DNA of 64,000 nucleotides, from NCBI RefSeq assembly GCF_003918875.1, contig NW_025765492.1, forward strand, positions 744,001 through 808,000, given 5' to 3'. The translations under genes were made by a program, and so were the position numbers. This DNA comes from Haliotis rubra. Taxonomy: Eukaryota. The notes beneath the pieces are model-generated. The model saw nothing but the letters and a program-made list of their open reading frames with translations, made no database searches and was not told where the DNA came from. Below are positions 22,494 through 54,424 of this stretch, piece by piece. Every line of letters begins with the position of its first letter. Positions within the stretch are counted from its first letter, which is position 1.

Positions 22494-22657
22494 TTTCTAA
22501 CTAAAGATATTCACAGTCCACCATAACAAACTGCATCGCTTTCACTCATATTTATCTAGATGAATACACTAACACGAAATAATATATAATGCTGAATTGG
22601 TCAAGCAGTTTCGGTCTGAATCATTGTTTATTATTTTTCAGTACAGCTCGCCAGCCT

Positions 22658-25600
22658 ATGATGTCAGCTCCAACGTACGTCGCTACCACGATACTAGTAA
22701 GTTAGTCAACTGCATTGTACTGTAATGTAAACTCTACTGACCAGGGAAAACCAAGTTCTATGGAGAGTCATCTTCTTTATTGCAATTAGTTTCGGTGTAG
22801 GTACTAACGCTATCAAGCAAGTGATGATAACGGTGATGATATCATATGCTTGATAACCGTGTTAGGACCTACACCGAAACGTCGCACTCATTGCGACAAA
22901 GAAGTTGACTATCCATAGAACTTTGTTTTCCTTCATCTTTACAACTTCTAAAATGCCTCTCATAGAAACTACTGACCAGGTTTAGACCACAATACCACAA
23001 GTATATTAACAAGCATAAGTGTCACATGTTTAACATCGCCTCCCCATATCAGTGGGTTGTGTCCACCTATTATCTCGTTTCTCTCACCCTCAAGGTTACT
23101 GACAAAAGGGAGGGACCAATCAATTAGATTTGCGTTATGTGTTTTCTGACTGACTGAGTGACTGAGTTTGGTTTTACGCCGCTTTTAGCAATATTCCAGC
23201 AACATCGCGGCGGGGGACACCAGAAATGGGCTTCACACATTGTGCCCATGTGGGGATTCGAACCCGGGTCTTCGGCGTGAGAAGCCAACGCTTTAACCAT
23301 TAGGCTACCCCACCGCCCCTGTTTTCTGAACATCGACAGTAGACTGTTATTTAGTTTTCAAAAACCTTCAGGTTACTGGATGTTTTTGTTGAAAGCTCAC
23401 TTTATCGTTATTACTGCAATATGAAAAGTTAGTCAAACACAGTTTGATGGTGTTTAAATGGATGCAAACAAGCAGCGATTACTCGATAGCGATGTACTTG
23501 ACACGAGTGTCGGAGTGCGTTCTCCACGTTGCGACTTGTAGCAACAACTTGTAGCATGCAACACAGTTGCAACGTGAGAACACCCTACTAGTAACGATTT
23601 GAAATCGCATACAACTAGTGGCAGCCGAGTTGTAAGACATCAGATTTGTCCTTATTCCTACTACAAATCGCAAGCTCTCAACCAAATACACTTCGCTCTA
23701 CCACCATGTATACTGTAATAAAACACACTTTTGCCCTGAACTATTATAGTTAAAGCACGAGGACGCTTGCGTCCGAGTGTTTTAACGTTATAATAGTTCA
23801 GGGCGAAAGTGTGTTTTATTACACTATACATGGTGGTAGGGCGAAGTGTATTTCTTTTCTAAGATACCAAATTTAATACTTTCTAAATATAATTACGATT
23901 AATTTAAGGCAGAAAACAAACGACGGTGTCGGTGACCTAAATTAAGAATCCTCGCACAGGGCTAACTGGCGCGCTGTTCTATTGATGTGTCTGCCCCCTA
24001 CGTTAAGACGAACGTTACCAGAAAAAGACAAATGATAACAGTTTGATGACGGTTTACGTTCGGATTAAATATCTTCTGAATTATTTTAATTACATCTGTC
24101 ATTAACGTAAACCATATGGGGCAATATGAACGTTGCATTTCTACTACCAGCGTAAGTTTAGATCAGTACATCCAGAGAAGTTGAGTAGTCAAGCGACATT
24201 CCACAATTGCATTGTGGAATGTAAACATTACGAACGTTACCGTGTCGCTGAAAACTTGTGAGTCGAAATGACACATTTTAACCGTCGTAAAACATAAACG
24301 TAATGTTTCCACCAGTGATGTTAGCTGCGTGAAGCAACAGCAAACCAAGAAACTGGATGCAACGGTGTAGTTTACTGTAGGAGGCCGTACGAGGCGATGA
24401 CAACTGACATGCATCGTGACGTCGCTTACATTGTGACGTAATGTAAAATGGTTCGATTACGAGGGGGCACACTAGAATGGCACAGTGACGGGATAACGTC
24501 ATTCAATTGTTACGTCATCAAAAAACTATACCTTTATTGTCTGATAATGTATTTTTTTTTCGATTGTTCTAACCGCTAGGCATCTTAGAAATTAATTCAT
24601 CATGATTTGGGGTATAGTTTGGTGATGAATGTGGACTGAGATGCTGTTTTGAAGTTTTTGTGACAGTTTTCACCGGTGGGACAGGATAGTCTAATGATCA
24701 ACGCGTTCGCTCGTCACACCCGGATTGAGTCCTCACATAAGTAAAACGTGTGAAGCCCCCAGCCGTGATATGGCTAGAGTATTGCACAAAGCGGCGTAAA
24801 ACCATACTTACTTCCCGGTGATGATCATTCTGTGTTTTATCACCACGTTCGGTCCATGGGATTGGTTATTACGTAAACTGCTGCGTTGGCACGCTGTATG
24901 GATTGAAACCACGAGGCTACCCCTAGCCGTAATAAGGGGCGGTGGGGTAGCTTAGTGGTTAAAGCGTTCGCTCGTCACTCTGAAAACTCGGGTTCTATTC
25001 CCCAAATGGATACAACGTGTGAAGCCGATTTCTGGTGTCAACCGCCGTGATATTGCTGGAATATTGCTAAAAGAGGAGTAAAAAAACTAAACACACTCAC
25101 TAACCGTGATAAAAGTGAACTCATTCACTTACGAAGTTTCACTTTTTCGAAACCTACGTTCACGATGATGATGATGCTTTGCTATATAACAAATGAACGA
25201 AACCCATTATCCCTCACACGTCACAGGAACAGTCGGAATAAAACACCTATTCAGTTACCCATGAGCGTACTGGCCTTCGTATGATAACAACACGATACTG
25301 TCAGTCTGTATATTCCAGTCCGATCCCTACGTCATGAAGGGAGATGGCGAGGCCTATGAAGGGTTCCTCGTTGACATACTCGACAAAGTTGCTGAGAAGG
25401 TTGGTTTCTACTACCTCATTCAGCCCTCAAAAGGCGGACAATACGGTTCTTACAGCAATGGACAATGGAGCGGCATGATTGGAGAGGTGGTACGAAGGGT
25501 ATGTATACACAGTAATAAACTGTGTAGTTCCTGCGATTTGTCAGTTTTGTCTGCAAAAGACCCTGCTTTTACCAAAAATGTTAATGACTATGGAAAGTGT

Positions 25601-27199
25601 GCGTCGCCTTTATATTCATACGGTTGCATAATGTATTACACACAGCAAATAAGTAGTACATTTTCAATATCTACAAAGGAAATCACATAGAAAAAAATAA
25701 GTTAGATATTTAGAACTTCTCAGGAAACACAAAACCAGTACAGCGTGGGCCTGTGAATATCAATCACTGCAGTAATTACCTATTGCGAACACCATACGTT
25801 GTCAGACACAATACGTTAACCACTGTACTTTCACATTTACCAAACGTACCTGCCAAAAAAGTCACACTAGGAGATGAGATATCGTTAACGTTTTCTTGAC
25901 CAGGAGGCAAACATAGGCCTGGGAGACGTCATCATTACCAGAGAAAGGGAACGAGTTGTGGACTTTTCCAAGCCATATCTAACCCAGACGCTACGTCTTC
26001 TGGTGAAAAAGCCTAGAATGTATGACCCTGGTCTTACTTTTTTGCTGGAACCATTCTCGGTGGAGCTTTGGTTTTATATCCTGTTTGCGCTTCTCCTCGT
26101 GGCAATCCTATTTGTCCTCATCGGTCGGTTCAACCCGTTTGAATGGAGACAAGTGCCATCGGACAAAGACCCCAGAGGTGCAAGACACAGCTTTGGCCTG
26201 AGAGAGAGTTTCATGTTTGTGTTCAGCACTATCACACTGCAAGGTAAGAACGTGAACCAGTTCAAGAAATGCACCTCACATTCCAAACGTTTCTCTTTCA
26301 ACCCATATTCCAATTTGGATGCGTTTAACAAAATGTATTCCACATTAATCTGAAACTTTCGAGGGGAACACTTAAATTGTATTCATATGATAAAAACTGG
26401 ACAAGGTATGTGACTCTAGCATAATTTTAACATGTCTAACATGATATTAATATATTTCTAAATCTTTGTTTCTAGACGTTCATGACGTGTTGCAGGTTAC
26501 CGAGAAACTCCCCGGTCTCTGGCAGGACGGGTGTTGGCCGTGTCTTGGTTCATCTTCGTCTTCTTCACCGTGGTGGCCTACATCGGAGCAGCTGTGACCT
26601 TCATGTTGGCCGGAGAAAGGATGCCATCACTGCCTTTTGAAGATCTTGAGGACATAGTTAATGGTGGGAAAATCCAAATTGGAATGGTGCGCCATGGAAG
26701 TGCGTTTAAATCTTTCAAGACGAGTAAAGTAGACATCTACCAGCGTGTGGCTGCCTACGTTGAGATGCAGAACTCGTTTGTCAACAACACTGCAGAAGGA
26801 ATTGAAAGGGTTAGACGTAGGCATGGAAACTTTGTAATGATTATGGAGTCGTTGAGAGCTGAATACATTACTGAGCGACAGTGTGATGTTATGGTGTATG
26901 GGAAAAGTCATTTTAGTAAGGCCTTGGCTTTTTTCACAATTCAAGGGTCCGGTCTCAAGCAAAAAATCGATGATGCTTTGCTCACATTGAAAGAAGATGG
27001 CACAATGCACATGCTGAAGGAGAAGTGGTGGAAAGCGGGGTTCTGTGGGCCTGCTGTGAATAAAAAAGAACCAACTATCAGGGCTGTAGAAGTTACGGTT
27101 CGGAGACTTGCAGCACCGTTCCTGCTGCTGCTGGCGGGTGCCATTCTAGCTGTTGTAGTCCTGTTGGGCGAGATCGTCTTCAGGAAACTCAGGCAGTAG
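22658..27199 (+). CDS. Minimal iGluR/IR-like receptor copy 1, ~420 aa; exons 22658-22696, 25319-25498, 25904-26243, 26496-27199
   Basis: GT-AG introns in consistent phases (0,0,1). S1 motifs TTIL-SDPYVM, YEGFLVDIL, GQWSGMIGEV, ITRERERVVDFSKPY; M1; pore STITLQG; PRSLAGR; M3; S2 with MES and two Cys; M4; short tail. Confidence 0.92.
22746..22968. mobile_element. Foldback (inverted pseudo-LTR) Penelope-like remnant; second copy 38681-38919
   Basis: Long imperfect palindrome, core tgataa-ggtgt..acacc-gaaacgtc, shared 3' tail. TSDs CTACTGACCAGG and TGTTCTGTAAC. Confidence 0.6.
23684..23853. repeat. ~170-bp near-perfect palindrome, probably part of a non-autonomous DNA element (Crypton-like) extending to ~24595
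   Basis: Arms aaatacacttcgctctaccaccatgtat...gccctgaactattata and tataatagttcagggc...catggtggtagggcgaagtgtattt around ggacgcttgcgtcc. Confidence 0.75.
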
Positions 27200-30100
27200 A
27201 GCTTCAGGCTTTTCTAAAATGCATTCATGCTTTGGGTGTCGTTTCAAAGCCACTACTTTCCTTCATATTTCCCTTCACTTTGTGTTGCGATCTCAAGTAG
27301 ATCTTAATAAGTAGTTGTGTTGACTGTTGACACTGTCAAAATGTTATCGTAGACTTATACACATTTAGATACTTGTACACCCTATATAAACATTTAACGT
27401 GAGCTTCACGATCCAAGCCTGGCGGATTAGCTGCGCAATGTGTCATTAAATATGTCATGAGACATATAAATCTATGATGTAGGGTTCAATTACAAGTTGA
27501 CGGCATGTTTTTTCTAACATCATTTATATTTTTCATCTTTGAGAAATATGTTCATTTCGCTGGTGTAGATTAAGGACGTGTGATGTTTGTGGCTGGCAAT
27601 GAAATCTAAAGTGACAGAAGCTGCTTAACAGAATTCCGTTCATTGCCAGAACCCTGAGACTATGGGTCCGCATACCAGAATTGACCCAATAAAGTTTCGT
27701 TAGTCGTGCCAGGATGATGTTGGGTTGGAATCTAATGTTATGGACCCGTGAAGGTCCGGGTTAGAATATTGATCTTTAGTAACCCATGCTTGTCGTAAGA
27801 GGCGACTAACGGGATCGGATGGTCAGGCTCGCTGGCTTGGTTGACACATGTCATCGGTTCCTAATTGCGCAGATCGATGCTCATGCTTTTGATCACTGGA
27901 TTGTGTGGTCCAGACTCGATTATTTACAGACCGCCGCCATATAGCTGGAATATTGCTGAGTGTGGCGTAAAACTTAACTCACTCACTAATGTTATCGATG
28001 GTTTGTCTGAACCAAAGTTGGAAGCATCTAAGACTTGCATCTTTTCATGCTTTCTTCTCCTACCACGCTGATATAGTTGCTATGATTGTGCTGACGCTGT
28101 ATGGAGGCTTCTTATATATCACTGACGAAAACTTTCCTTTATCAAGTTCTCACATAATTGTATTGGTGTTTGATTTTATCTGTTATGCATGGAGCAAAAT
28201 ATATTGTGACAATAATCACAGTCCTGAGTCTCATTTAAAACAAATACGGGCACCAACAATGATCAGTCTCCTCAACGAAGGGCAGCTGTAGGCGTGTTGG
28301 GTGAACACGTTTATACCCCAAACTGCTGAATTAAATACACCACACTCATAATGTGGACACAAACTATGAATTTTATAGTTGAAACATGTAACATTATTTG
28401 TCACATACTGCTTCCCAGTACCTTCATACAGTGACAATAGGAACTTTAACTGCAACAGGCAGGTGGCAGATGTGAACACAACAGACACAATACATAACTT
28501 AACAGTCTAGCTAAACACAGGCCACGAATAAATGTTCCACAACGTGACCTCGGTTGGAAGTCGTGATCATTACTGTGTTGTAATGGAAGTGATATTTTAG
28601 AACGTTTAGGGTGTGTGCTATGTAATGACTCCGTTAATGTATGTCAACTACAGCGACAAAGGGAAGGACCATCTGATATTTGGAGGGAAGTGTGTGTCCG
28701 CCAGTAGATAACAAACACAATTGTTAAACAAAAAACATACGTTGTCTACTTGGATATTCTGAACAAATGTATCTGAGAGCAAATATATACCCAGTCCCCA
28801 AAAAACTAATCTGTTATGGTAGAAATGTATTTCAGAAATACATTTCTGATTGGCCTTCCCCAAGTCATGGACTAATATGGGGGTGAGGTGACCAGGTTTG
28901 ACGGTTGTAACTCACATTTTCAGTCACGTGTTTGATTTGATTGCCGGAAAACTATTATCTGTTTAGGTGATCCCATCCGGGAACTCAACATTTTAGATGG
29001 CTAATTCGGAAAGGTCAAACGATTATGTTGTATCAGCTGATGATAACATATAACGATACTAATTTACAACAACCCAGACCATGATTGGCTGAAATATGTG
29101 GAGATATTCTGATTCATGTCAAGGTTGTTCCTCAGCACTGAGTGCGGCCCTTGCCTGGAGGAGAGATTTGAAGAACCAAAAGTTATTGGGGTAAGTTTAT
29201 TTATTGTCTTTTACAAACGGTAATAAAACAGATATTGAAGATGGACACGGGCGATTCTGCTGCCTGGGGCGCCGGTTTTCTCTGAATTGTCGGGTACCCG
29301 ACTCCCATCATTTACTTTCAGACTTCGTTCATGTTAAGGGTCTAAATATTGGGTAAAATTACTGTAAAATCGATGCCTGCATGTTAGTTTTGTTTGTTTG
29401 TTTATTTGTTCAGCAATATTCAAGCTATATGACTGCAGTCATAATCGAGTCTGAACCAGACAATACTGTGATCAAATCTATGAACATCAATCTCTTCAAT
29501 TGCGATACGATGACATGCGTCAACCATGTTTGCGAACCTGACCACCCGGTCCTCTTTGTCGCCTCTTTCCATGCATATAATAATATTGCACTTGCAGCGT
29601 GAGTGCCATAGAACAACAGCATCTTCAGTTCATGTCGAGGGCTGTCAGTTATAAACTGTGTTAATCGCACCTCCTTGGGCTAGACTCGCAATTCAGTACA
29701 GTTTAATGGCTACATAGTTGGATCAAAGCGATAGTACTATATTGAAAAATATTTTATTTCAATTCTGTGGCTGTTCTGTAACAGTTCTGTCTTGTGTTGA
29801 CCCTATGACAAAAAACACATTCAACTTGTTTGAGAGACATTAGAAGTTGCCTCGTAAGTGGATTTGTGTGTTTCATAATAGAGTGGAGAGATCTATTAAG
29901 AACACAATGGAATGGATCGGGTATTCCAGTTGTGTGGATCGATGCTCGTAATGCCCATCCTGTCTGGCCCAAACACCAAGAAAACATGCACTTGGCGTTG
30001 ATTCACAAACCATAGTATCTTTGGATCTCTCTTCCTTGATAGTGAATAAAATGTTGATAAAACGGAGTCGGGTTTCCGTGTCCCTCACATGCTTCTTAGT

Positions 30101-30323
30101 TGAGGGATTCATTGTTGACATCAAACCCTTATATAACTATAAATACGAAAATAACATATGATGATGAATCAGATAAAACATATAAAAAACACACTCGGGA
30201 AAATAAACAAAAGTTTTGCCAGGTTCATCTGTGGTGTGAATTAATAATTCCATTTCTGCATATTTCAGATTTAAACTGTTTCATACTTATTTATTCTTTT
30301 TCAGTACAAGTTAACAATCCACG

Positions 30324-33300
30324 ATGTCAGCTCCAACCTACACCGTTACCTCGATACTAGTAAGTTACTGAAAGTATCCTTTGATTCAGGCCAAGTTCAA
30401 ACCTCATCGCGACATATTAAGCTTAAGTGGTCGTGTAATATAATTTTCATCATCGGCCCTCTAATGTGAACAGTTATTAACTTTGCAAAACTGTCATCAT
30501 TTTTACTGTAATATGAACTGAAGATTAATCCATGTTTGATGCTCGCTAAAATGTGATCGATGATGGTGATGTATTTGACAAGAGTGTCAGAGCTTTATAC
30601 ACAACGTTGGATGTGCATCGCACACTGATCCCAGTATTGTTTTGGGGTCAAAGTTAGTTGCCATGTGTATTCTTTATTTGTCAGGCTGTTTTTTTAACCA
30701 TAATTGTTAGAATTGGATGGTAATGATATTGGGCTGGGATATTGGTTGGAATGTGTTTGGAATGGTTGCCAGCGGTAAGACAGGATACGCTCAAGGTAGT
30801 CTAGTGGTTAAAGCGTTCACTCCTCACATTGAGTTTGATTCCGAAATAGGTAAAATATGTGATGGCCATGTCTGATGTCACCGCGATAAGACGTGATATG
30901 GCTAGATTATTGCTAACAGCGTCGTAACACTATACTCACTCGCTCACGTATTTGTATACACCTGGTATCACCGCACAGACATCTCAGACACATGTTAATA
31001 GTATAGTCGGATTCGTACATTTAATTCTGCTTAACCAAAGATAGTGGAAAGGGTAGTGTCGCTGTTATTAGTTCAAGGAGCTAGTTTCATTAACCAACTC
31101 ATCCTCATGTATAGGAAATGACCAACCCTAACGATTGCGGGGCATGTCTGATGTCCGGCAAAATACTTGTAGTGATTGCCTGACTGACTGACTGAGTTTG
31201 GTTTTACGCCGCTTTAAACAATATTCCAGCTACATCACGGCGGGGGAACACCAGAAATGGGCTTTACACATTGTACCCATGTGGGGATTCGAACCCGGGT
31301 CTTCGGCGTGACGTACTTGTAGTGAAAAGGAGAGAACCTACTTGTATGTCTTCTCCCGACTGACTGATGCATTACCGTCACCACAGTCGTTAGTGACATC
31401 GTACCCCAACAGCGTGGATCCTTGCTCATATCAATCACCGGATTGTCTGGTCCAGTATTCCATACAGTCGGGTCTGTTTAGGTGCTAAAACTGCGCGATT
31501 CGTTGTGTAGAGACGTACCAGTAACAGTGAGAGTTTCCAGTAATATCACGACAGGGGCACGCTAGAAAAGGGCTTGACACATTGTAACCCATGTGGAGGA
31601 TCGAACCCGTACCTGACGAGTGAACACTGTAACCACACAGCTACTCCACCACCCAAAACTGAAACATTGTTCATACCAACTGTCCTTCACTTTAAATGAA
31701 TATGTTTCATGCATTTCAATAACATCCATTTTCACAGCTGTGTAGCATTATTGCTCGAATACTAGGTTCACAATGTTTATAATTATCTGCTGTAGCGTCA
31801 TGTTCGTGTCCATGGAATTGGCTGTTACGTTAATCACTCTTTGAAAAGAAACCATTAGGCTACCCCAACACCCCAAACCGTGACAGAACTGAAATACCGT
31901 TCAAACCAGCGTTTAAACAACTCGGTCACTTACTTTCTGTAAGTTAATGATGATGATTATGATGATCAACGATACTATCTATGAGCGTATTTGTCTTCGT
32001 ATCATAGCAACATGTCTGTATATTCCAGTCCGATCCCTACGTCATGAAGAAAGATGGCGAGGGCTATAAAGGATTCCTCGTTGATGTACTCGACAAAGTT
32101 GCCGAGCTGGTGGGCTTCAAATACAACATTCGGCTCTCTAAAGACGGCAAATACGGATCTTACGGCAATGGACAATGGAGTGGCATGATTGGAGAGGTGG
32201 TACGAAGGGTATGTATACACTCTAGTTCCAGTATTTGTCTGCAATACAGGCTTTTGGCAAAGTGTTTTGTCTGTGTGTGCCTCTTTCATATTTATAAAGA
32301 TTCCACCCTTGAAGGTCCAGGTTAGAATGAACCTTCAGTAACCCATGCTTGTCGTAAGAGGCGACTAACGGGATCGGGTTGGTCAGGCTCGCTGGCTTGG
32401 TTGACACATGTCATTGGTTCCCAATTACTCAGATCGATGCTCATGCTGTTGATCACTGGATTGTTTGATCCAGACTCGATTATTTACACACCGCCGCCAT
32501 ATAGCTGGAATATTGCTGAGTGTGGCGTAAAACTAAACTCACTCACTCACTATAAAGTTTCACGTATGACATGCTTTATTACACTTAGCAAAAAACATAG
32601 CATATTTTCAATATTTAAAAAGAAAATCAAAATATATTTAGAACGGCATCGGCCTAATGTGACTAGCAGTCACTTTAGTTCCTATAAACCATAAGGTTCA
32701 CTGTTGAACTTTCACGTTTACCAACTGTATCTGCCAACAAAGTCATATCAGGAAGTGAGGACATATTTAACCTTTCCTTGACCAGGAGGCAAACATAGGC
32801 CTGGGAGACGTCACCATTACCAGAGAAAGAGAACGAGTTGTGGACTTTTCCAAGCCATACCTAAGTCAGACTCTACGTCTTCTAGTGAAAACGCCTAAAA
32901 GGTATGAACCTGGCCTTGGCTATTTTCTGCAACCATTCTCGTCGGAAATTTGGTTGTCTATCCTGTTTGCGCTTCTCCTCGTGGCAATCCTATTCGTCCT
33001 CATCGGTCGGTTCAACCCGTTTGAATGGAGACAGGTGGCATCGGACAAAGACCCCAGAGGTGCAAGACACAGCTTTGGCCTGAGAGAGAGTTTCATGTTT
33101 GTGTTCAGCACTATCACACTGCAAGGTAAAAACGTGAACCAGTTCAAGAAATGCACCTCACATTCCAAACTTTTCTCTTACAATCCCTATTCCAATATGG
33201 ATGCGTTTTAAAATATACATTCCACATTAATTTGAAACTTGGTAGGGTAACACGTAAACTGTACTTATGTGATAACAGCTGTACGTGTTGTTGGCACCAG

Positions 33301-34079
33301 CATAAGTTTAACATGTAGTGATATCAATATTTCCAAATCTTTCTGTTTCTGTTCATGACATGTTGCAGGTTACCGAGAAACGCCCCGGTCTCTGGCAGGA
33401 CGGGTGTTGGTCGTGTCTTGGTTCATCTTCGTCTTCTTCATCGTGGTGGCCTACATCGGAGCAGCTGTGACCTTCATGTCAGCCGAAGTAGGGATGCCAT
33501 CACTGCCTTTTGAAGATCTTGAAGACATAGTTGATGGTGGGGACATCCAAATTGGAATGGTGCGCCATGGGAGTTCGTTTAAATCTTTCAAGACGAGCAA
33601 AGTAGACATCTACCAGCGTGTGGCTGACTACGTTGAGATGCGGAACTCGTTTGTCAACAACACTGCAGAAGGAATTGAAAGAGTAAGACGTAGTCATGGA
33701 AACTTTGTAATGATTCTGGAGTCGTTGCAGAGCTGAATACATTACTGAGCGACAGTGTGATGTTATGGTGTATGGCAACAGTCATTTCAGTCAGGCCTTG
33801 GCTCTTTTCACAAATAAAGGGTCCGGTCTCCATCAACAAATCGATGATGCTTTGATCACATTGAGAGAAGATGGCATAATTCACATGCTGCAGGAGAGAT
33901 GGTGGAAAGCGGGGCGCTGTATTCCTCCAGATGTTGAGAAAAGACAGCAACCAACCACCAGGGCTGTACAAGTTACCTTTCGGAGACTTGCAGCACCGTT
34001 CCTGCTGCTCCTGGTGGGTGCCATTCTGGCTGTTGTAGTCCTGTTGGGCGAGATCGTCTTCAAGAAACTCAGGCAGTAG
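30324..34079 (+). pseudogene. Receptor copy 2; exons 30324-30359, 32029-32208, 32786-33125, 33369-34079; 1-bp insertion at ~33728 gives a premature TGA at 33736
   Basis: Same exon sizes as copy 1 apart from exon 4. TTGcAGAGCTGAA versus TTGAGAGCTGAA in copy 1. Otherwise intact, so a recent pseudogene or an assembly error. Confidence 0.8.
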
Positions 34080-35462: not shown

Positions 35463-35527
35463 TCCTCAACGAAGGACTGTTACACGCGTGTTGGGTGAAC
35501 ACGTTCATACACCAAACTGCCACATTA

Positions 35528-35872: not shown

Positions 35873-35907
35873 AAATACACCACACTCATAATGTGGACTC
35901 AAACTAT

Positions 35908-37409: not shown

Positions 37410-37414
37410 ACACA

Positions 37415-37465
<51 letters not shown>

Positions 37466-37470: not shown

Positions 37471-39449
37471 TTTGACATTTTTGTTCACAACACGACCTTA
37501 ACTGCACAATGTTTGTTAGACCTGGCTTATCAGCTATGATTCCACTCGTTCCGTTTGCGAGCACTATCGTAATATCGACGGATGCAATCATGCGTTTGGG
37601 AATTGCAGGAAAACTATTATTTGCTTTGGTGATCCCATGCGAGAACTCAACATTTAAGATGACTTATTTGGAAAGGTTGAACTAATATGTTGCATCAGCT
37701 GATGGTGACATATAACGATACTGGGGTTTTTTTAACAGAATATAGTTGGCTGAAATATGTGGAGCTGTGGAAATATGTTTATTCTTGTCAAGGTTGTTAC
37801 ATAGCACAGAGTAGGGTCCGTGCCTGGAGGAGAGATTTGAAAACCGAAAGTTATTGGGGTAAGTTAATTTATTGTCTGTTTATGAGAGATCATAACACAT
37901 ATTGAAATGGGTCACAAGAGGTCCTGTTGTTCTCTGTGAATTATCGGGTACCCGAACTTGCCAGACTCCCATCATTAATGATTCTCGTTCAGACATCTTT
38001 CATGTTAAGGATCCCATTTGTTGGGTAGAATTACTGCAATATCAATACTTGCATGGACGTTTTGATTAACGCCAAACTCAGCAATATTCCAGCTACATGG
38101 CGGCGGTCTGTAAATAATCGAGTCCGGACCAGACAATCCAGTGATCAACAGCATGAGCCCCGATCTACACAATTGGGATACGATGGCATGTGTCAACCAA
38201 ATCAGCGAGCTTGACCACCCGATCCCGTTAGTCGCCTCTTACGAAGACCAATCCTAACCCGGATTCTCACGGGTATCATGAGTGAGTGAGTGAGTTTAGT
38301 TTTACGCCGCTTTTAGCAATATCTCAGCAATATCACGGCGGGGGACACCAGAAATGGGCTTCACACATTGTACCCATGTAGGGAATCGAACCCGGGCCTT
38401 CGTAGTGACGAGCGAACGCTTTAACCATTAGGCTACCCCACCGCCCCACACGCGTATCATGAAGGTTGGTAAACATGCATATAATAATATTGCACTTGCA
38501 GCGTGAGTGTGATAGAGCAACTGCACCTTCAGTTCATGTCGAGGGCTGTCAACTGTAAAGTGTGTTAATCACATCGCTAGGGCTAGACTCGCAGTTCAGA
38601 GCTACTTAATGCGTACATAGTAAGATAAAAGTGATCGTACGCATCAAAGATATATTTAAATTCTGTGTCTGTTCTGTAACTGTAAGAAAACTAATTTCTA
38701 TGTATAGTCAACTTTATTATTGCCATGAATGAGACGTCTCGATGTAGGTACTTACACCGTTATCAGCAACCGATGCTCGATAAGTGGTTGCTTGATAATG
38801 GTGATAGCGGTGTTAGTTTCTACACCGAAACGTCGCACTCATTGCAATAAAGAAGTTGACTATACATAGTAATTGGTTTTCCTTCATCTTTACAAGTTCT
38901 AAAATGGCTCTCAATGAAATGTTCTGTAACTTCCCTGTTAAGTTAATTCTTCGTTTTGACCCTATGGCCCTATCCGGCAATACACATCCAATTTCATTGC
39001 GAGGCATTAGAAGTTGCCTCGTAAACGTCCATTAATTAATAAGCTTTAAGCAATAAGAGTTAAGTATCATATGCCATCATATCATTTTACCAAAGGCGAT
39101 GCTTATTTATAACCGAATGGCTTTTAGGGATTTAAGATAAGAATATGTGTTCCAACCACCCCATCCTTGTCAGAAGACGCTACTAATTGTATCGGGTGGT
39201 GAGGCTCGAGGACTTGCATACCATCGTATTCCAGTTGCGTGGATCGCTCGATGCTCATAATGCCCACCCTGCCTGGACCAAGCAACAATAGAAAGAGAGA
39301 TCATGCACGTTAATTCACAAAGCATGCTATCGTTGGATCTCTCTTCCCTGATGGAGGGTAACAAGTTGATAAAACGGAGTCGGGTTTCCGTGCTCCTCAG
39401 ATGTTTCTCACTTGAGAGATTCACTGCACACCACATCAAACTCTTATAT

Positions 39450-39950: not shown

Positions 39951-40169
39951 CTATCGAGTAGATTCACAGGTAAATTGTGTCGAAAAGGATATATGATGAT
40001 GAATCAGATAATCCATAAAACACACACTCGGGAAAATAAACAAAGGTTTGACAGGTTCAGCTGTGGCGTGAATTGACAATACACTTCAATTTCGGTGCGT
40101 AATGCCTATTTCAGATTTAAAACGATTTATACTTATTTATTCTTTTTCAGTATAAGTCGACAACCCACG

Positions 40170-43100
40170 ATGTCAACTCCAATCTACACTGTAACCTCGA
40201 TACTAGTAAGTTACTGAAAGTATCCTTTGATTCTGGCCAAGTTCAAACCTCATCGCAACATGATTAAGCTTAAGTGGTCTTGTAATTTGATTTTCATCAT
40301 CGCCCCTCTAATGTGAACAATTAACAACTTTTCAAAGTTTCTTATTTAAAAAACCGTGCAATCATTTTCGCTGTAATATGAACTGAAGATTAAACCGATG
40401 TGCACGCCCATGTTTGATGCTGGCTAAAATGTGATCGATGATGGTGATGTATTTGACACGAGTGTCGGAGTTTTATACATAACGTTGGAAGTGTTTCGGA
40501 CACTGATCCCAGTATTGTTTGGGGTCAAAAATCAGTTGTCATATGCATTCTTTATTTTGTCCGGCTGGTTTTTACCATGACCTTCGCCATATCCATTTAT
40601 CATAACTGCTTGAATTGGATGGTAATGAAATTGGGCTGGGATGTTGGTTTTGAACGAGTTTGGAACGGTTACCACCGGTGAGACAGGAGACGCTCAAGGT
40701 AGTCTAGTGGTTAAAGCGTTCATTCCTCACACTGGGTTTGATTCCGAAATTGGTAAAATATTTGAAGCTCATGTCTGGTGTCACCGCCCCAAGCCGCGAT
40801 ATGGCTAGATTATTGCTAACAGCGTCGTAACACTATACTCACCCACTCGCCCTTTTGTATACACCAGATATCATCGCACATGTTAGACATCTCAGACGCA
40901 TGTTAATAGTATAGTCGGAATCGTACATGTAACTCTGCTTTAACCAAAGATTCTGAAAAAGGTAAACTCGCTGTCAAAAAGAACATAATTGGTTCTAGAA
41001 ACTATTTTCATTACTTTGTCCTCGTGGATAGGAAATAACCATATCTAACTAATCGCAGGGCGTGTCAGATGTCCGGCAAAATATTTGTAGTGAAAGGGAG
41101 AGAACCTACTTGTGTGTCTACTGATTTATTACCGTCAGCATAGTTGTTAGTGACATCGTACCCCAATAGCGTGGATCCTTGCTCATATCAATCACCGGGT
41201 TGACTGGTCCAGTATTCCAGCAGGTCTGTTGCAGTGCTAAAACTGTGCGATTCGCTGTGTAGAGACGTACCAGTAACAGTGAGAGTTTCCAGTAATATCA
41301 CGACAGGGGCACGGTAGAAAAGGGCTTGACACATTGTACCCATGTGGAGGATCGAACCCGTACCTGACCAGTGAACACTGTAACCACGCAGCTACTCCAC
41401 CACCCAAAACTGAAACAATGTTCATACCAACTGTCCTTCACTTTAAATGAATATGTTTCATGCATTTCAATAACATCCACTTTCACGGCTGTGTAGCATT
41501 ATTGCTCGAATACTAGGTTCACACTGTTTATAAATATCTGCTGTAGCGTCATGTTCGTGTCCATGGGATTGGCTGTTACGTTAATCACTCTTTGAAAAGA
41601 AACCATTAGGCTTCTCCAACACCCCAAACCGTAACAGAACTGAAATACCGTTCAAACCAGCGTTTAAACAACTCGGTCACTTACTTTCTGTAAAGCAATG
41701 ATCGAATCTTTGGTTCACGATGATTCTATGCGATATCACCAACGAACGAAACCCATCATCACTCACACGCTACTCGTTCCAGGAACAATCAAACACGTAT
41801 TCAACTACATATGACTGTTTTTGTCTTCGTATCATAGCAACATGTCTGTATATTCCAGTCCAAGCCCTACGTCATGAAGAAAGATGGCGACGGCTATAAG
41901 GGATTCCTCGTTGATGTACTCGACAAAGTTGCCGAGTTGGTGGGCTTCAAATACAACATTCGGCTCTCTAAAGACGGCCAATACGGATCTTACAACAATG
42001 GACAATGGAGTGGCATGATTGGAGAGGTGGTACGAAGGGTATGTATACACTCTAGTTCCAGTATTTGTCTGCAATACAGGCTTTTGGCAGATTGTTTTGT
42101 CTGTGTGTCGCTGTCCTATTTAAAACATGCTTCACTTATGACATGCTTTATTACACTCAGCAAAATAGAAAATCAAAAGATATTTAGAACTTCTCTGGAA
42201 ACAAATAATCAATACAGCATAGGCCTAATGTGATTATTACTCATTCTACTTTCTATCAGCCATAACGTTCACTGCTGAACTTTCACGTTTACCAACTGTA
42301 TTTGCCAACAATATCATATCAGGAAGTGAGGACATATTTAACCTTTCATTGACCAGGAGGCAAACATAGGTCTGGGAGACGTCATCATTACCAGAGAAAG
42401 GGAACGCGTTGTGGACTTTTCAAAGCCATACCTAACCCAGACGCTACGTCTTCTGGTGAAAAGGTCTAGAAGGTATGACCCTGGTCTTGGTCTTTTGCTG
42501 GAACCATTCTCGGTGGAGCTTTGGTTTTATATCCTGTTTGCGCTTCTCCTCGTGGCAATCCTATTCGTCCTCATCGGTCGGTTCAACCCGTTTGAATGGA
42601 GACAGGTGGCATCGGACAAAGACCCCAGAGGTGCAAGACACAGCTTTGGCCTGAGAGAGAGTTTCATGTTTGTGTTCAGCACTATCACACTGCAAGGTAA
42701 GAACGTGTACCAGTTCAAGAAATGCACCTCACATTCCAAACGTTTCTCTTACAATCCCTATTCCAATTTGGATGCGTTTAACAAAATATATTCCAAATTA
42801 ATTTGAAACTTGGAATGGGAACATTTAAACTGTACTTATATATGATAAAAACTGGACGATGTACGTGTTGTTGGCACCAGCATAAGTTTAACAGGTAGTG
42901 ATGTCAATATTGCTAAATCTTTGTTTCTAGACGTTCATGACGTGTTGCAGGTTACCGAGAAACGCCCCGGTCTCTGGCAGGGCGGGTGTTGGCCGTGTCG
43001 TGGTTCATCTTCATCTTCTTCACCGTGGTGGCCTACATCGGAGCAGCTATGACCATCATATCGGCTGAAGGAGGGATGCCATCACTGCCTTTCGAGGGTC

Positions 43101-43660
43101 TTGAGGACATAGTTGATGATGGAAGAATCAGTATTGGAATGGTGCGTCATGGAAGTGCATTTCAATCATTCAAGACGAGCAAAGAAGACATCTACCAGCG
43201 TGTGGCTAACTACGTTGAGATGCGAAACTCGTTTGTCAACAACACTGCAGAAGGAATTGAAAGAGTTAGACGTAGTCATGGAAACTTTGTAATGATTATG
43301 GAGTCGTTGACAGCTGAATACCATGCCGAGCAACTACCATGTAATGTTATGGTGTATGGCAAAAGTCATTTCAGTAAGGCATTGGCTCTTTTCACAATTC
43401 AAGGGTCCGGTCTCAAGCTGAAAATCGATGATGCATTGCGCAAATTGAGAGAAGACGGCACACTATACAAGCTGCAGGTACTATGGTGGGGAAAGTGGTT
43501 CTGCTTTCCTGGAGTTGCGAAACGACAGCAACCAACCATCAGGGCTGTACAAGTTTCCTTTCGGAGACTTGCAGCACCGTTCCTGCTCCTCATGGTGGGT
43601 GCCATTCTGGCTGTTGTAGTCTTGTTGGGCGAGATCGTCTTCAAGAAACTCAGGCAGTAG
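40170..43660 (+). CDS. Minimal iGluR/IR-like receptor copy 3, ~421 aa; exons 40170-40205, 41859-42038, 42357-42696, 42951-43660
   Basis: Intact frame and the same splice structure as copy 1. Confidence 0.92.
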
Positions 43661-46100: not shown

Positions 46101-46414
46101 TGATTGATTATATCATTGTCTGAGAATGTACTTTGAATCTATTTCTTACCTGAAACTCTTGTTAATCGTTTCGAGGCGCGGTTGGGTAACGCCAATGGCC
46201 CAAGTCCAAAAACAGACGGGTACGATGTGTTAAGCCCATTTCTGGTGTACCCCGCCAAGGGTAGCCCAATGGTCATTCACTCACTCGCACCCAATGGTCA
46301 AGTGATCGCACGACGATCACCAAACACGGAATGTAATACAAAATTTGTATTATATTCCGTGTTTGGGTAGCCAAGGGTAGCCTAATGGTCATTCACTCAC
46401 TCACACTTCTGTGT

Positions 46415-49085: not shown

Positions 49086-50697
49086 CGACACATCATCAAC
49101 TGTTTGGTGTTTCAGACATCTGGAAATTCTAAGAAAGTTTCATTCGGTATCGTTCTTATGTCATGGTACAAATGTGTGAACAGGTGAGGTTGACCACAAC
49201 TGGACAATGTTTGTCAGACTTGGCTTATCAGCTGTGATTCCACTCGTCTAGGTTATGATCGTAATGTCAACGGAGCGATCACAATGTGGGTATAATTGCA
49301 GGAAGAATACCATTTGCTTAAGTGATCCCTTCCGAAAAGGTCGATGGCTTATTGGGAAAGGTTGAACAATTATGTTGCATCAGCTGTAGTGACATATAAC
49401 CCATAATATAGTTGGCTGAAATAAGCGGAGCTGTGGAAATATGTTTATTCTTGTCAAGGTTGTTACTTAGCACAGAGTACGGTCCGCGCTTGGAGGAGAA
49501 ATTTGAGGAACCGAAAGTGATTAGGGTAAGTTTATCTATTGACTGTTTATAAACGACTATATCACACACTGAAGGGGGACACGAGTGGCACTGTTGTCCA
49601 AGTAAAGCTGCTGCAGATCATTGTGAATTGTCGGGTTCCCCGATCGTGTCAAATTCCCAGATTCTCTTTCGTGTCAAGGATCTCAAATATTGTCCAGGGT
49701 AACAATGCGGAAATATTTATACTTACATGAAGGTTGTTTGTTTGTTTGTTTGTTTGTTGTTTAACGCCGCAATCAGCAGCGTTGCTGAAGACCAATTCTT
49801 ACCCGGATGTTCAAGGTTGGTACGCATGCATATACCAATATTGCACTATTTAATGCTTACGTATTTGGATCAAAGCGATTGTACTATATGGGTCGTTCGC
49901 ATGAAACATATTTTATTTCAATTGTGTGTCTGTTCTGTAAAGTTATTGCTTGTGGTTACCCTATGACCCTATCCGCAAAACACATCGAACTTCTTTGAGA
50001 AGTTGCCTCGTAAGTGCGTAAGGTTAGCACATAATGATGAACATCTGTTTGCTACAATTAGAAGCGACTTTTCGATGAATGTTCTTACACCGTTAGGGGT
50101 AGCCTAGTGGTTAAAGCGTTGGCTCGTCACGCCGAAGACACGGGTTCGAATCCCCACATTGGTACAATGTGTGAAGCCCATTTCTGGTGTCCCCCGCCGT
50201 GATGTTGCTGGAATATTACTAAAAGCGGCGTAAAACTAAATTCAGTCAGTCAGTCAGTCTTACACCGTTATCCATCAAGGGATGGGCATGGTACGGTTAA
50301 GGGCATACATAAGCATGAGATTGTGTTTGCTGCGGTGGCTGAGTGGGTTAGATGGTTGACTTCGTGTGCTGGCGATTAGGGACTCAATCTAACACGTACT
50401 GGAAAGGGAACTTCACTGAGGTGTAATCCCAAATATAACACATGCTACAGATGGTTTATAGTTTGGAGATTCACTGATCACAACATCAAACTATGTTGAT
50501 CTGGGAGATTCATAGATACATACGAACATAGGAAATGATGAAGAATTACTTTAAAAATATCGAAAAACACACAATGTTTTGCAAGGTTCGGTGATGGCGT
50601 GAATTAACAATAAACTTCCATCCAGGCGCGTAATGCCTGATTAAGATTTTAACGGATTCATACTTATTTATTCTTTTTCAGCACAGCTCGACAACCC

Positions 50698-53600
50698 ATG
50701 ATGTCAGCTCTAAAGTACACCGTTACCTCGATACTTGTAAGTTAATTAACGTACCATTTGATATGAAAAGTACTGACCAAGTTCAAACCTCATCGTGACA
50801 TGAATAAGGCTAAGTGGTCTTGTAATATGAATTTCACCACGCGCCTCTTGAGATCGCTGTATGGAAACCCCACAAACTGTGATAAAACTGTAATATCGTC
50901 AAACCAGCGTTTAACGAATTCAGTGACTTACTGTAAAACATTTTTGTTCGAATACTTGGTTCACGATGATTGATTCTATGCGATATCATCATTATCCATT
51001 ATCACTCACAGGCTACTCGTTCCAGGAACAATCGGAGTAAAACCTGTATTCTACTATCAATGAGCGTATTTGTCTTCGTATCATAGCAACATGTCTGTAT
51101 ATTCCAGTCCAAGCCCTACGTCATGAAGAAAGATGGCGAGGGCTATGAGGGATTCCTCGTTGATGTACTCGACAAAGTTGCCGAGTTGGTGGGCTTCAAA
51201 TACAACATTCGGCTCTCTAAAGACGGCCAATACGGATCTTACAACAATGGACAGTGGAGTGGCATGATTGGAGAGGTGGTACGAAGGGTATGTATACACA
51301 ATTATAAACGGTGTAGTTCCTGTAATTTGTCTATTTTGTCTGCAATAGACCCTGATTTTACCAGAAACGTTTGGTGGTTATGAAAGGTGTGTGTGTCGCT
51401 TTTATATTCATAAAGTTGCACTTGGTGTTTTTCAAATCCTGGAATCGTTTATGACCGAATTTATCACACACAGCAAATAATAAGCACCTTTTCAATATTT
51501 AAAACAAAAATCAAAAGATATTTAGAATTTCACAGGAAAGGCATATCCAATACAGCATCGGCCTAATGGGAATATCAGTCACTATAGTTGGAAGTCCGAG
51601 ATTTGGTTATCCCAAATATACTGAGTCAAATTAGAAACTTCACAATCATATATCAAATATTACGTAATAGAATGGACACAAGAATGTGGGATAGAGGTTA
51701 TCATTTATTTGTTAAGGTCGATAGGATGAACTGAGAATGATCACAATGCCAAAAATCGGTTCCATGTGGTTACAAAATTTATCAATAAAAGACGTCAACG
51801 AAGTGTCAAGTCGCAAGAAATTAAATCTGATGCTTCAAACGTTCGATAGCGTTTATAGCCACCAAGTGCGTTCACAACTGCCAAGCAACGCCAGGATCCT
51901 GCAAACTCTGAGGTTGTTTCCTGAGAATGCGCAGATGTCTACCAAGAGTATCCCAGATGTGCTCGGTTGGATTGAGATCAGGTGACCTTGACGGCCGATC
52001 AAAAACGTTGACTCTTGCGTTCTGCAGGTAATTCCTGGTCAAGATGGCTGTATGGGGTCTGGCATTGTTATGTTGAAAGTGCAGACCATGACAATGTGCT
52101 GCCACGAATGGTATACGTTTGGGGGCTAGAACCTGGTCGCGGTAACATGCAGCATTAAGGTTCCACGGATAACCAGAAATCGGGAACGGGCAATCCCACA
52201 TAAAGCACGCCAAACGATGACACTTCCGCCCCCAAATCTCTCAACTTCCTGTACACAACACTGAGGATAACGTTCACGGCGTCGCCTCCACACTCACCAT
52301 CAGCGAATCTGAGGTTACATTTTGATTCATCACTGAAGAGAATTCGATTCAAGTCTCTGTGAGTCCATCGGATGTGTCGTTGGGCCCACAGCAAACTCTG
52401 ACGTCGATGTAATGGCGTCAAAATGGTTCCGCGACATGGTCGTCGAACTGGTCGCGCCAGTTTGTTGCAGTCGAGGCTGTAAAAAAAACCCAGTCCGACG
52501 ACTGCATCCCATTGTCCTTGCAACGTCAATTTCTGACGTCCCCGCTCCCAGCATGCCAACGGCATGCTCACGCTGCACATTTGAGAGACGCGGCATAAGA
52601 ATTGGCTGTTCTGAATAGTGCTTTAAAGTGTTTTTCCACTTTGTATTATTATACAGTTGATGGGAACATGTGCGATCAAATGCACGTGCCATGATAAGAT
52701 AACGTAATCAGTGGCACGTGAAAAACACGTTTTAGCACTATTGTGGGGTGCACGATATTTAGATTGATTCAAAAGTGCTCTGGTGAGTTGTTTCGTGAAT
52801 CGATACTTGGGGAATAATATTATAAAACCCGAACACTGTCTACTATAGTATAACAATTGATATTTCTTTTTACATATATGATTTGACTCAGTATATTCAT
52901 TGTCGCACGACGCAAAATATTAACCACTCTACGTTCATGTTTACCAAATGTATCTGCAAACAAATCCATATTAGGAGATGAGGATATTTTAACGTTTCCT
53001 TGACCAGGAGGCAAGCATAGGTCTGGGAGACGTCATCATTACCAGAGAAAGGGAACGGGTTGTGGACTTTTCCAAGCCATACCTAAGTCAGACTCTACGT
53101 CTTCTGGTGAATAAGCCTAGGAGGTATGACCCTGGTCTTAGTTTTTTGCTGGAACCATTCTCGGTGGAGCTTTGGTTGTCTATCCTGTTTGCGCTTCTCC
53201 TCGTGGCAATCCTGTTCGTCCTCATCGGTCGGTTCAACCCGTTTGAATGGAGACAGGTGGCATCGGACAAAGACCCCAGAGGTGCAAGACACAGCTTTGG
53301 TCTGAGAGAGAGTTTCATGTTTGTGCTCAGCACTATCACACTGCAAGGTAAAACTGTGAACCAGTTCAAGAAATGCACCTCACATTCCAAACGTTTCTCT
53401 TACAATCCATATTCCAATATGGATACGTTTGACAAAATATATTCCAAATTAATTTGAAACCTTGTTGGGAAACATTTAAACTGTATTCATATGATAAAAC
53501 GTGGACATGGTAAGTGTCGATGACACTAGCATACGTTTAACATGTAGTGATATTAATACTACCAAATCTTTGCTTCTGGACGTAACACGTTATATATGGG

Positions 53601-54424
53601 ATTACACTTTCTCAGTAAGTCAAGTACAGATTCTGGTACTTTTTCGAACATACCATATGACCACTTTCTAAATAACATAGTGTTTTCATGTTTCTGAACG
53701 TTCATGACGTGTTGCAGGTTACCGAGAAACGCCCCGGTCTCTGGCAGGACGGGTATTGGCCGTGTCTTGGTTCATTTTCATCTTCTTCACCGTGGTGGCC
53801 TACATAGGAGCAGCTGTGACCTTCATGTCGGCCGGAGTAAGGATGCAACCACTGCCTTTTGAAGGTCTTGAGGACATAGTTGATGGTGGTGAAATCCAGA
53901 TTGGAATGGTGCGCCATGGAAGTGCGTTTCAGAAATTCAAGACGAGCAAAATAGACATGTACCAGCGTGTGGCTGACTATGTTGAGATGCAGAACTCGTT
54001 TGTCAACAACACTGCAGAAGGAATTGAAAGAGTAAGACGTAGTCATGGAAACTTTGTAATGATTATGGAGTCGTTGACAGCTGAATACCATGCCGAGCGA
54101 CCACCATGTAGTGTTATGGTGTATGGAAAAAGTTATTTCAGTCAGGCCTTGGCTCTTTTCACAAATCAAGGGTCCGGTCTCAAGCAGAAAATCGATGATG
54201 CATTGCTCAAATTGAGAGAGGATGGAACAATACACATGCTGCAGCGGAAATGGTGGAAAGCGGGGTTCTGTGGGCCTGCTGTGTACAAAAAACAACCAAC
54301 CACCAGGGCTGTACAAGTTTCGATTCGGAGACTTGCAGCACCGTTCCTACTCCTGCTGGTGGGTGCCATTCTGGCTGTTGTAGTCCTGTTGGGCGAGATC
54401 GTCTTCAGAAAACACAGGCAGTAG
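50698..54424 (+). CDS. Minimal iGluR/IR-like receptor copy 4, ~421 aa; exons 50698-50736, 51108-51287, 53008-53347, 53718-54424
   Basis: Intact frame and the same splice structure as copy 1. Confidence 0.92.
51619..52893 (-). mobile_element. Decayed Tc1/mariner transposon in an intron of copy 4
   Basis: TIR TACTGAGTCAAAT...ATTTGACTCAGTA with TA flanks; MPRLSNVQREHAVGML, ILFSDESK, QHNNARPH, SRSPDLNPTEHIW. Confidence 0.9.

Follow-up and report, generated by a model that had tools for sequence, protein, structure and literature searches.

The window analysed here, a 64,000-nucleotide stretch of Haliotis rubra contig NW_025765492.1, carries a tandem array of four genes for minimal glutamate-receptor-like channels without an amino-terminal domain (ATD) and without a signal peptide, and the encoded proteins fall into a new, single, gastropod-wide clade of leaderless ionotropic glutamate receptors (iGluRs; SH-aLRT 99). 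iGluRs are type I-like membrane proteins in which a cleavable leader exports the N-terminus. We consider it probable that the four genes are recent duplicates in H. rubra which belong to a leaderless gastropod iGluR clade, that their translation starts at the ATG of a short exon (exon A), and that helix M1 serves as an N-out signal anchor. The array does not introduce a molecule of a new kind, and RefSeq already contains its genes: the products of copies 1 and 3 match automatic RefSeq models at every residue, so that genes and starts have already been annotated.

All four copies could be modelled on the + strand with canonical AG/GT splice sites throughout, and the predicted four-gene array of minimal iGluR-like channels was thus borne out. 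Each copy consists of a non-coding exon 1, which belongs to a conserved upstream block, the ATG-bearing exon A and the coding exons B, C and D, which are located in the window as follows:

20506..20630, + strand: copy 1, upstream block and non-coding exon 1; donor after 20630, in-frame TAA at 20617
22642..22696, + strand: copy 1, exon A, 55 nt; ATG at 22658 and 22661; encodes MMSAPTYVATTIL
25319..27199, + strand: copy 1, exons B (25319-25498), C (25904-26243) and D (26496-27199, includes the stop); 420 aa, identical to P0156 (H. rubra RefSeq)
29068..29190, + strand: copy 2, upstream block and non-coding exon 1; donor after 29190
30305..30359, + strand: copy 2, exon A; ATG at 30324, in-frame TAA at 30312-30314
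32029..34079, + strand: copy 2, exons B (32029-32208), C (32786-33125) and D (33369-34079); RNA-like X1 contig at the C/D junction
33728..33728, + strand: copy 2, extra base that shifts the frame in the assembly; absent from the covering X5, X6 and X1 contigs
37736..37858, + strand: copy 3, upstream block and non-coding exon 1; donor after 37858, in-frame TAG at 37812
40151..40205, + strand: copy 3, exon A; ATG at 40170
41859..43660, + strand: copy 3, exons B (41859-42038), C (42357-42696) and D (42951-43660); 421 aa, identical to P0155 (H. rubra RefSeq isoform X5)
49392..49525, + strand: copy 4, upstream block and non-coding exon 1; donor after 49525, in-frame TGA at 49518
50682..50736, + strand: copy 4, exon A; ATG at 50698 and 50701
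51108..54424, + strand: copy 4, exons B (51108-51287), C (53008-53347) and D (53718-54424); 421 aa

Exon A measures 55 nt in all four copies and ends in phase 0 after ..T[T/S]IL, from which the frame continues with S[D/K]PYVM. For copy 2, RefSeq additionally holds an isoform X2 (P0153) with an ATG at 29096, inside the upstream block/exon 1. The literature searched yielded no published discussion of these four H. rubra genes. A 257-aa open reading frame in intron 1 of copy 3 was considered as a receptor exon and rejected; it is a Tc1/mariner transposase remnant.

The proteins of 420-421 aa (copy 2 with the extra base removed) have the arrangement S1-M1-P-M3-S2-M4 followed by a tail of 5 residues. 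The bilobed S1/S2 ligand-binding domain (SBP_bac_3 fold) was recognised by PF10613 at residues 6-110 (E 1.8e-29; PF00497, E 1.8e-17), PF00060 matched residues 125-401 (E 9e-22), and in a PDB alignment residues 5-417 were placed on residues 413-827 of GluK (E 6e-77). The AlphaFold2 model (pLDDT 88) has its first strand at residues 6-11 and helices at 126-149, 172-184, 195-224 and 388-419, corresponding to M1, the pore loop, M3 and M4, and all three approaches agree in placing the domain boundary at residues 5-6. Searches with PF01094, the amino-terminal domain, gave no match, and the protein starts at S1; together with its length and a tail of about 5 aa, this corroborates the minimal receptor architecture that had been proposed. 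AMPA and kainate subunits (GluA1-4, GluK1-3; 7ysv, 5kuf, 4u5b) similarly align end to end over residues 5-417, with E values of about 1e-77 to 1e-70, and have the disulfide of the ligand-binding domain (LBD), the ligand-binding Arg and Glu and the overall fold in common with the array proteins, which differ from them in the missing ATD, the missing signal peptide and the 5-residue C-tail.

iGluRs without an ATD are well known. The same domain set, in about 430-520 aa, is found in signal-peptide-bearing proteins such as the fish 'probable glutamate receptors' of the kainate-binding-protein type (P0160, P0162), and further such relatives occur in Lingula, Owenia, Tubulanus, hemichordates and other molluscs and are the nearest outgroups on our tree. 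All of them possess a clear hydrophobic leader 19-33 residues before S1, whereas the gastropod clade has none. By the simple hydropathy measure on which we judged the signal peptide to be absent, the maximum Kyte-Doolittle value of a 9-residue window near the N-terminus, the leaderless proteins reach 0.3-1.3 and their signal-peptide-bearing relatives at least 2.0.

Relatives were gathered mainly by exhaustive protein search, to which word-indexed searches added few members, and the tree was built without reference sequences of ionotropic receptors (IRs). On this tree, all 15 leaderless proteins group together in a single clade (SH-aLRT 99), so that one change suffices. Fourteen are named members from five gastropod lineages and span Haliotis, Gigantopelta, Patella, Babylonia, Nucella and Biomphalaria; the fifteenth, P0008, is known only from the Tara ocean metatranscriptome. 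The clade lies within a wider group of ATD-less relatives that have signal peptides and come from other molluscs as well as other phyla, its sister sequences carry signal peptides, and relatives of this type are also encoded in Haliotis itself (e.g. P0141). As the trait is common to a well-supported gastropod clade, it is not an artefact of one genome, and from the sequences compared the leaderless state looks real and old, being common to all sampled snails and limpets. The original prediction of a leaderless family is thus upheld by the low N-terminal hydropathy, the clade-wide state and upstream stops in other species (see below). The trait is gastropod-wide and no novelty of Haliotis. The clade would represent AMPA/kainate-like iGluR subunits of gastropods which descend from ATD-less, signal-peptide-bearing relatives and later lost the signal peptide, too. 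The gastropod subclasses split hundreds of millions of years ago, and the clade has apparently done without a leader since before that split while keeping the hallmarks of an extracellular LBD.

When exon 1 is spliced to exon A (donors 20630, 29190, 37858 and 49525), an in-frame stop precedes the ATG in every copy, namely TAA at 20617 in copy 1, TAA at 30312-30314 inside exon A in copy 2, TAG at 37812 in copy 3 and TGA at 49518 in copy 4, which is exactly the series, with the second stop in the 55-nt exon, that had been claimed. The RefSeq model of H. cracherodii has the same exon 1 to exon A architecture. The Gigantopelta locus has the same mini-exon, with a TAA 27 nt before the ATG; in Patella a TAA lies 9 nt before it, and two independent Tara contigs of P0008 have a TGA 66 nt upstream with no intervening ATG. 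The Babylonia locus is uninformative in this respect due to an upstream microsatellite. Translation would accordingly begin at the ATG of exon A, 5-6 residues before the first S1 strand, and exon 1 would be 5' untranslated region. An inverted CCAAT box 5' of exon 1 had been considered as a promoter mark, but it occurs in copies 1 and 2 only (copies 3 and 4 read AGTTGG) and was therefore dropped as evidence for the start site.

It might be argued that the true first coding exon has been missed, that a signal peptide reading into the TARQP/ISRQP frame comes from an exon further upstream or from an alternative promoter, and that the leaderless start merely reflects an annotation habit common to gene predictors. 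The frame across the 5' part of exon A is indeed open in copies 1, 3 and 4, as had been pointed out. Copies 1 and 4 are distinguished by three substitutions within the 15 nt preceding the ATG, none of which would alter an amino acid in the ATG frame, a pattern that could hint at translation of this stretch; copy 3, however, shows non-synonymous changes there relative to both, and copy 2 has a TAA within exon A. The one splice joint seen in reads lies between exons C and D, and the in-frame codons before the ATG in the Tara contig happen to resemble a hydrophobic leader, yet stops lie 9-66 nt 5' of the ATG in Patella, Gigantopelta and the two transcript contigs. An upstream exon with a leader in the right phase would have spoken against the original prediction, but the genomic search 5' of the four copies gave no conserved, phase-compatible candidate, with none in 7 kb for copy 4, nor does the conserved upstream block at 16447-16676 or its counterparts contain a leader-like open reading frame. 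Moreover, an exon missed by a predictor usually leaves models truncated at varying points within S1, of which P0097, P0100 and P0024 are examples, and a start Met kept a few residues ahead of strand 1 throughout the 15 members would be unusual for predictor error. We therefore regard a missed leader exon as unlikely.

In the assembly, copy 2 carries one extra base at 33728 which breaks the frame, leading to a stop after 307 aa, and the RefSeq model P0158 follows this broken frame. The read analysis covered copy 2, where transposon joints dominated the joints table. The base is missing from all contigs that cover the position, the DNA-like X5 and X6 as well as the RNA-like X1, and without it the open reading frame is complete and encodes 421 aa; all four copies are thus probably intact. 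Run X1 is called RNA-like from its exon-only cover and one splice joint, not from metadata: its contig joins 33123 to 33367, the C/D junction of copy 2, and hence represents spliced RNA. From coarse depth bins, exon A of copy 2 and the bin containing its exon 1 also seem to be covered. That the array is decaying, consisting of pseudogenes or non-functional duplicates with lost 5' ends, would fit the frameshift in the assembled copy 2, the fairly high dN/dS among the paralogues (0.41-0.64) and the strongly changed gate motif. Against this stand three intact open reading frames, a fourth that is restored once the base absent from the reads is dropped, the spliced contig, and an architecture that is the same across gastropod subclasses, which makes decay highly improbable. 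The same dN/dS values, along with the intact frames, also count in favour of functional genes.

How, then, might a leaderless subunit reach its topology? In place of a cleavable leader, the long and very hydrophobic M1 would act as an N-out (type III) signal anchor, behind which the approximately 125-residue S1 crosses the ER membrane, and the remainder would insert in the usual iGluR topology with the LBD outside. Both route and topology we infer from the features of the proteins. M1 is more hydrophobic in the leaderless clade than in the relatives (2.24 vs 1.99, p 0.003, in a test that ignores shared ancestry), the stretch preceding M1 is net negative, and there are basic residues behind both M1 and M4; in the Haliotis proteins, the first 15 residues behind M1 are about neutral in charge. 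The net charge of S1 does not differ between leaderless and leader-bearing relatives and thus provides no support for N-out insertion. Most N-out proteins have N-tails much shorter than the 124-139 residues of the array clade. A hydrophobic transmembrane domain with positive charge behind it favours N-out anchoring, as does an N-domain that is not folded (PMC6269167). In type III proteins such as GPCRs inserted by the EMC (Chitwood et al. 2018, PMC6269167), the first transmembrane domain likewise carries the N-terminus in the absence of a cleavable leader, whereas the N-domain of the array clade is mostly one lobe of the LBD, and some 125 partly foldable residues are at the hard end for such anchors. 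As S1 is unable to finish folding before S2 is made, it should nevertheless stay translocatable. If confirmed, the family would offer a natural test of the limits of N-out signal anchors for a partly foldable N-domain of 125 residues.

Since N-in insertion tends to be imposed by N-domains that are large and can partly fold (PMC6269167), the opposite orientation has to be weighed as well: S1 would be cytosolic, M1 would insert N-in, the pore loop would enter from outside as in a K+ channel, and a cytosolic ligand would be sensed. The missing leader would agree with such an arrangement, as would the loss in all four H. rubra proteins of an N-terminal sequon. However, this N-x-T, located directly before strand 1 and about where the signal-peptide-bearing relatives have one, is kept in several clade members, an NNT sequon in S2 is present in all four copies, and the LBD disulfide cysteines, C316 and C370, are invariant in 45 aligned sequences. 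The charges around M1 and M4 also fit the normal orientation, and cysteines and flanking charges together would favour normal over unusual topology. An inverted channel is therefore very unlikely; were it real, gastropods would possess a family-wide set of intracellular-ligand-gated iGluR channels, upside down relative to every known iGluR, whose clamshell senses a cytosolic metabolite.

For the leaderless state as such, there is a published precedent: the amphioxus receptors GluE1 and GluE7 are likewise animal iGluRs without a predicted canonical signal peptide (Ramos-Vicente et al. 2018, PMC6307864). These belong to the Epsilon class, to another phylum and are single genes, in contrast to the conserved gastropod clade. 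In HEK293T cells, both reached the surface only with the leader of rat GluA2 (PMC6307864), a failure which, by analogy, would count against self-sufficient leaderless insertion. It might thus be proposed that the Haliotis subunits need a partner, either a signal-peptide-bearing iGluR or IR co-receptor or a dedicated chaperone, or that they are ER-resident or intracellular in normal topology. HEK293T cells produced the amphioxus proteins without delivering them to the surface (PMC6307864), Haliotis encodes signal-peptide-bearing ATD-less relatives such as P0141 that could provide such a partner, and the array proteins have almost no C-tail for trafficking signals. On the other hand, co-translational translocation of the N-terminus of another chain is not normally rescued by a partner subunit, and a partner would be compatible with, rather than opposed to, an N-out anchor. 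We judge this reading to be unlikely. N-out insertion by M1, if confirmed, could explain the heterologous failure of other leaderless iGluRs such as GluE1 and GluE7.

Protostome IRs (Croset et al. 2010, PMC2924276), including molluscan IR-A to IR-D (PMC11682238, PMC12837371), also lack an ATD and have a partly diverged pocket, and, as with the array, they show tandem duplication and occur in molluscs. In the IR literature searched, there was no mention of missing signal peptides. On the tree, built without reference IRs, the near relatives include deuterostome proteins, a poor fit to a protostome-only family. A qPCR primer for BarIR-A.3 (PMC12837371) encodes LIGRFS, a motif of the array family, and is taken as a lead only; accession and peptide searches of the supplements of that study found no match to molluscan IR-A, and the assignment to this class was dropped, leaving the primer motif by itself.

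With regard to function, we infer from the pocket that the proteins would be ligand-gated channel subunits for an amino-acid-like ligand, possibly sensory, whereas the label of chemoreceptor is conjecture. The Arg and Glu that would bind an amino-acid ligand through its alpha-carboxyl and alpha-amino groups are kept, although pocket and gate are altered, and the abalone array might thus supply fast-evolving candidate receptors of the amino-acid type, with settlement or feeding cues as possible ligands. Of the ligand triad, R88 is nearly invariant and the Glu in MESL is present, while the Thr is replaced (GSA); from our reading of the alignments, Leu occupies the Q/R position, and the pocket Thr positions of AMPA/kainate subunits have become Ile and Ala. 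The M3 gate SYTANLAAF of these subunits is not kept in any of the four copies, which read AYIGAAVTF or AYIGAAMTI, and other members of the clade have AYTANLTAF or similar.

Scanning the window for motifs and comparing it with itself recovered one gene in four plus-strand copies between about 20.5 and 54.4 kb, the array of the original prediction. In the exon models, which were drawn from conserved splice sites, each copy consists of a conserved upstream exon (exon 1), a 55-nt exon A carrying the ATG, and three further exons, B of 180 nt, C of 340 nt and D of 704-711 nt, with AG/GT at every junction of all four copies. The predicted proteins comprise 420-421 aa, of which five residues follow M4, as had been estimated (about 420 aa with a tail of about five). 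The copy 1 protein is identical to P0156, the RefSeq Haliotis rubra 'glutamate receptor ionotropic, kainate 1-like', and that of copy 3 to P0155, 'glutamate receptor 4-like isoform X5'; thus, these genes have already been automatically annotated with exactly these starts. A further RefSeq H. rubra model, P0153 (isoform X2, 458 aa), is a chimera of copies 2, 3 and 4 (29096-29190, 40151-42696 and 53718-54424), in which exon 1 of copy 2 provides an ATG and 32 residues, exons A-C come from copy 3, and exon D comes from copy 4. It results either from read-through, from trans-copy splicing, or from a read-mapping artefact among near-identical copies.

The proteins lack an amino-terminal domain (ATD), as predicted. 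PF10613 begins at residue 6, PF00060 and PF00497 cover the remainder, and no ATD family is among the Pfam matches. Against solved structures, residues 5-417 align in a single piece to GluK 413-827, i.e. S1 through M4 (E 6e-77), with AMPA receptors scoring close behind, and an AlphaFold2 model built from 45 relatives (pLDDT 88) places the first strand at residues 6-11 and helices at the expected positions of M1, the pore helix, M3 and M4. Nor did 9-residue hydropathy reveal a hydrophobic stretch ahead of S1, in line with the proposed absence of a signal peptide (leader): the maximum is 0.3-1.3 in this family versus at least 2.0 in leader-bearing relatives, a simple measure which nevertheless separates the classes sharply.

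When the upstream exon donors (20630, 29190, 37858 and 49525) were spliced to exon A, the stop predicted ahead of the ATG was reproduced in each of the four copies:

20617, plus strand: TAA, first in-frame stop before the ATG of copy 1
30312-30314, plus strand: TAA, first in-frame stop before the ATG of copy 2, within exon A
37812, plus strand: TAG, first in-frame stop before the ATG of copy 3
49518, plus strand: TGA, first in-frame stop before the ATG of copy 4

Copies 1 and 4 (22642-22657 and 50682-50697) differ at three sites within the 15 nt preceding the ATG, all third codon positions of TARQP, and copies 2 and 3 depart from this synonymous pattern by a stop and by replacements. For each copy, all sequence from the preceding gene to exon A was scanned for an ATG-started hydrophobic ORF of 14-60 codons ending at a donor of the required phase. 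For the in-frame upstream leader exon that the original prediction had named as contrary evidence, this genomic scan gave no conserved candidate: there was none in copy 4, and copies 1-3 have a few that lack homology to one another, one lying inside a repeat. A conserved block farther upstream (16447-16676 and its counterparts) contains no leader-type ORF either. This block adjoins exon 1 in copies 2-4 and is separated from it in copy 1 by about 3.8 kb (16677-20505), which probably entered the promoter region as an insertion.

Reads were considered as well. The run X1 (50 Mb of contigs) behaves as RNA, as judged not by its label but by its exon-confined cover and by a contig joining 33123 to 33367, the exon C/D junction of copy 2. 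Its depth bins give signal at exon A and exon 1 and zero in 28900-29099. The joints listed for 28900-34899 are dominated by SINE and transposon copies and do not include the 5' joints of copy 2, so that the 5' structure in H. rubra rests on the logic of the sequence and on RefSeq models rather than on reads. As assembled, exon D of copy 2 carries an additional base at 33728 that the other copies lack, and the frame closes after 307 aa, as it does in RefSeq (P0158). The read contigs over 28900-34899, from X1 and the DNA-like runs X5 and X6, all drop one letter exactly at 33728, and removal of this base yields a clean 421-aa ORF. As the read contigs differ from the window by about 4 letters per 100, their source is a different haplotype or a different individual, and the surplus letter at 33728 is an error of the assembly or else a private allele.

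Exon D, used as the query of an exhaustive profile-free search, matched 1778 relatives. Those with a complete N-terminus fall into two classes, one with a clear leader 19-33 residues ahead of S1 and one that has no leader and starts 0-10 residues before the position of copy 1 residue 1. All named leaderless proteins are gastropod (Haliotis species, Gigantopelta, Patella, Babylonia, Nucella and Biomphalaria); one more, P0008, is from an ocean metatranscriptome. In a maximum-likelihood tree of 52 proteins, a quick search with SH-aLRT rather than bootstrap support, the 15 leaderless proteins form one clade (SH-aLRT 99), and one change of leader state suffices. The nearest outgroups (chiton, scallop, Lymnaea and Haliotis itself) have a leader and no ATD, as have the more distant ones (nemertean, annelid, brachiopod, hemichordates and fish). 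ATD-less iGluRs are well known, predictions of leaderless iGluRs have precedent, and the genes of the array are already in RefSeq; a gastropod-wide, single-origin clade without ATD and leader was not found described in the literature searched.

Other sequences provide independent checks of the start codon. Two Tara metatranscriptome contigs, each from its own sample, encode P0008, and both show a TGA 66 nt ahead of the ATG and no ATG between. The Gigantopelta locus shares the mini-exon design of the array: an acceptor is followed by a TAA 27 nt upstream of the ATG, by 16 codons and by a donor. In Patella a TAA lies 9 nt ahead of an ATG that forms the final triplet of its exon. In the RefSeq model of H. 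cracherodii, the orthologous exon 1 is spliced to exon A, and the ten additional residues of this model are due solely to an ATG of exon 1 that is specific to that lineage. In one P0008 contig (L001, 76-141), the 22 in-frame codons from the upstream TGA to the ATG, starting with TTG right after the stop, resemble a signal peptide (FSFFKFILFLKLSANLQSSA), which may be a coincidence, the UTR being AT-rich, a remnant of the lost leader, or a sign of non-AUG initiation.

Both disulfide cysteines of the ligand-binding domain are invariant in 45 sequences, several clade members have an N-x-T sequon right before strand 1, at about the same place as in leader-bearing relatives, and the NNT in S2 noted in the original prediction is kept in all four copies, which argues for a clamshell that is still turned towards the lumen and the outside. 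The M1 segment is long and strongly hydrophobic (2.24 in the leaderless clade versus 1.99 in leader-bearing proteins, p 0.003 with shared ancestry ignored), net negative residues precede it, and basic residues come after M1 and M4. N-out anchors are favoured by hydrophobic transmembrane domains followed by positive charge, and a folded N-domain stops translocation (PMC6269167); according to the title of Denzer et al. 1995, as cited there, N-domain size does not block it. S1 on its own is an incomplete domain. Together, the hydrophobic M1, its flanking charges and the incomplete S1 favour a model in which M1 would serve as an N-out signal anchor carrying S1 across. Amphioxus GluE1 and GluE7, which likewise have no predicted leader, stayed inside HEK cells until a leader was added (PMC6307864), a caution for the anchor model.

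Among the paralogues dN/dS is 0.41-0.64, peaking in S2, with the channel core most conserved, a pattern compatible with diversifying receptors. The ligand Arg and Glu are retained; the gate motif is altered, and so are the Thr positions. A chemoreceptor role of the array is a guess. At the M3 gate (26496-26600 and counterparts), AYIGAAVTF stands where SYTANLAAF is expected; since other gastropod clade members keep AYTANLTAF, the change is specific to the Haliotis array. By reading of the alignment, the pore-loop Q/R position is Leu (TLQG).

The array also harbours repeats. Introns and spacers contain scattered copies of a SINE-like element about 165 nt long, at these and other sites, in both orientations overall:

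22337-22495, 23147-23320, 31180-31313, 36746-36909, 38279-38447: SINE-like element
43928-44093, 44518-44686, 50096-50259: SINE-like element, more sites

At 31100-31299 the summed contig word depth in DNA-like runs is in the millions, and a second element (32305-32548, 21028-21272, 27742-27987) behaves in the same way as the SINE-like one. The 257-aa ORF at 39303-40076, within the first intron of copy 3, was dismissed as a transposon remnant by its Tc1/mariner transposase HTH (PF01498, E 4e-7). The spacer from copy 3 to copy 4 holds a short tandem array of 36/72 nt (45433-45998), similar to the mucin-like repeats of 12468-14898, and after it a 48-nt array. In the same spacer the 15-nt unit CACACACACAACAGT recurs about 182 times over 2.7 kb (46417-49081), which accounts for the strong GC and AT skew there. 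Just beyond copy 4, an 80-nt unit that contains the final codons of this copy, from the end of M4 and including the stop, is repeated 2.2 times (54383-54558).
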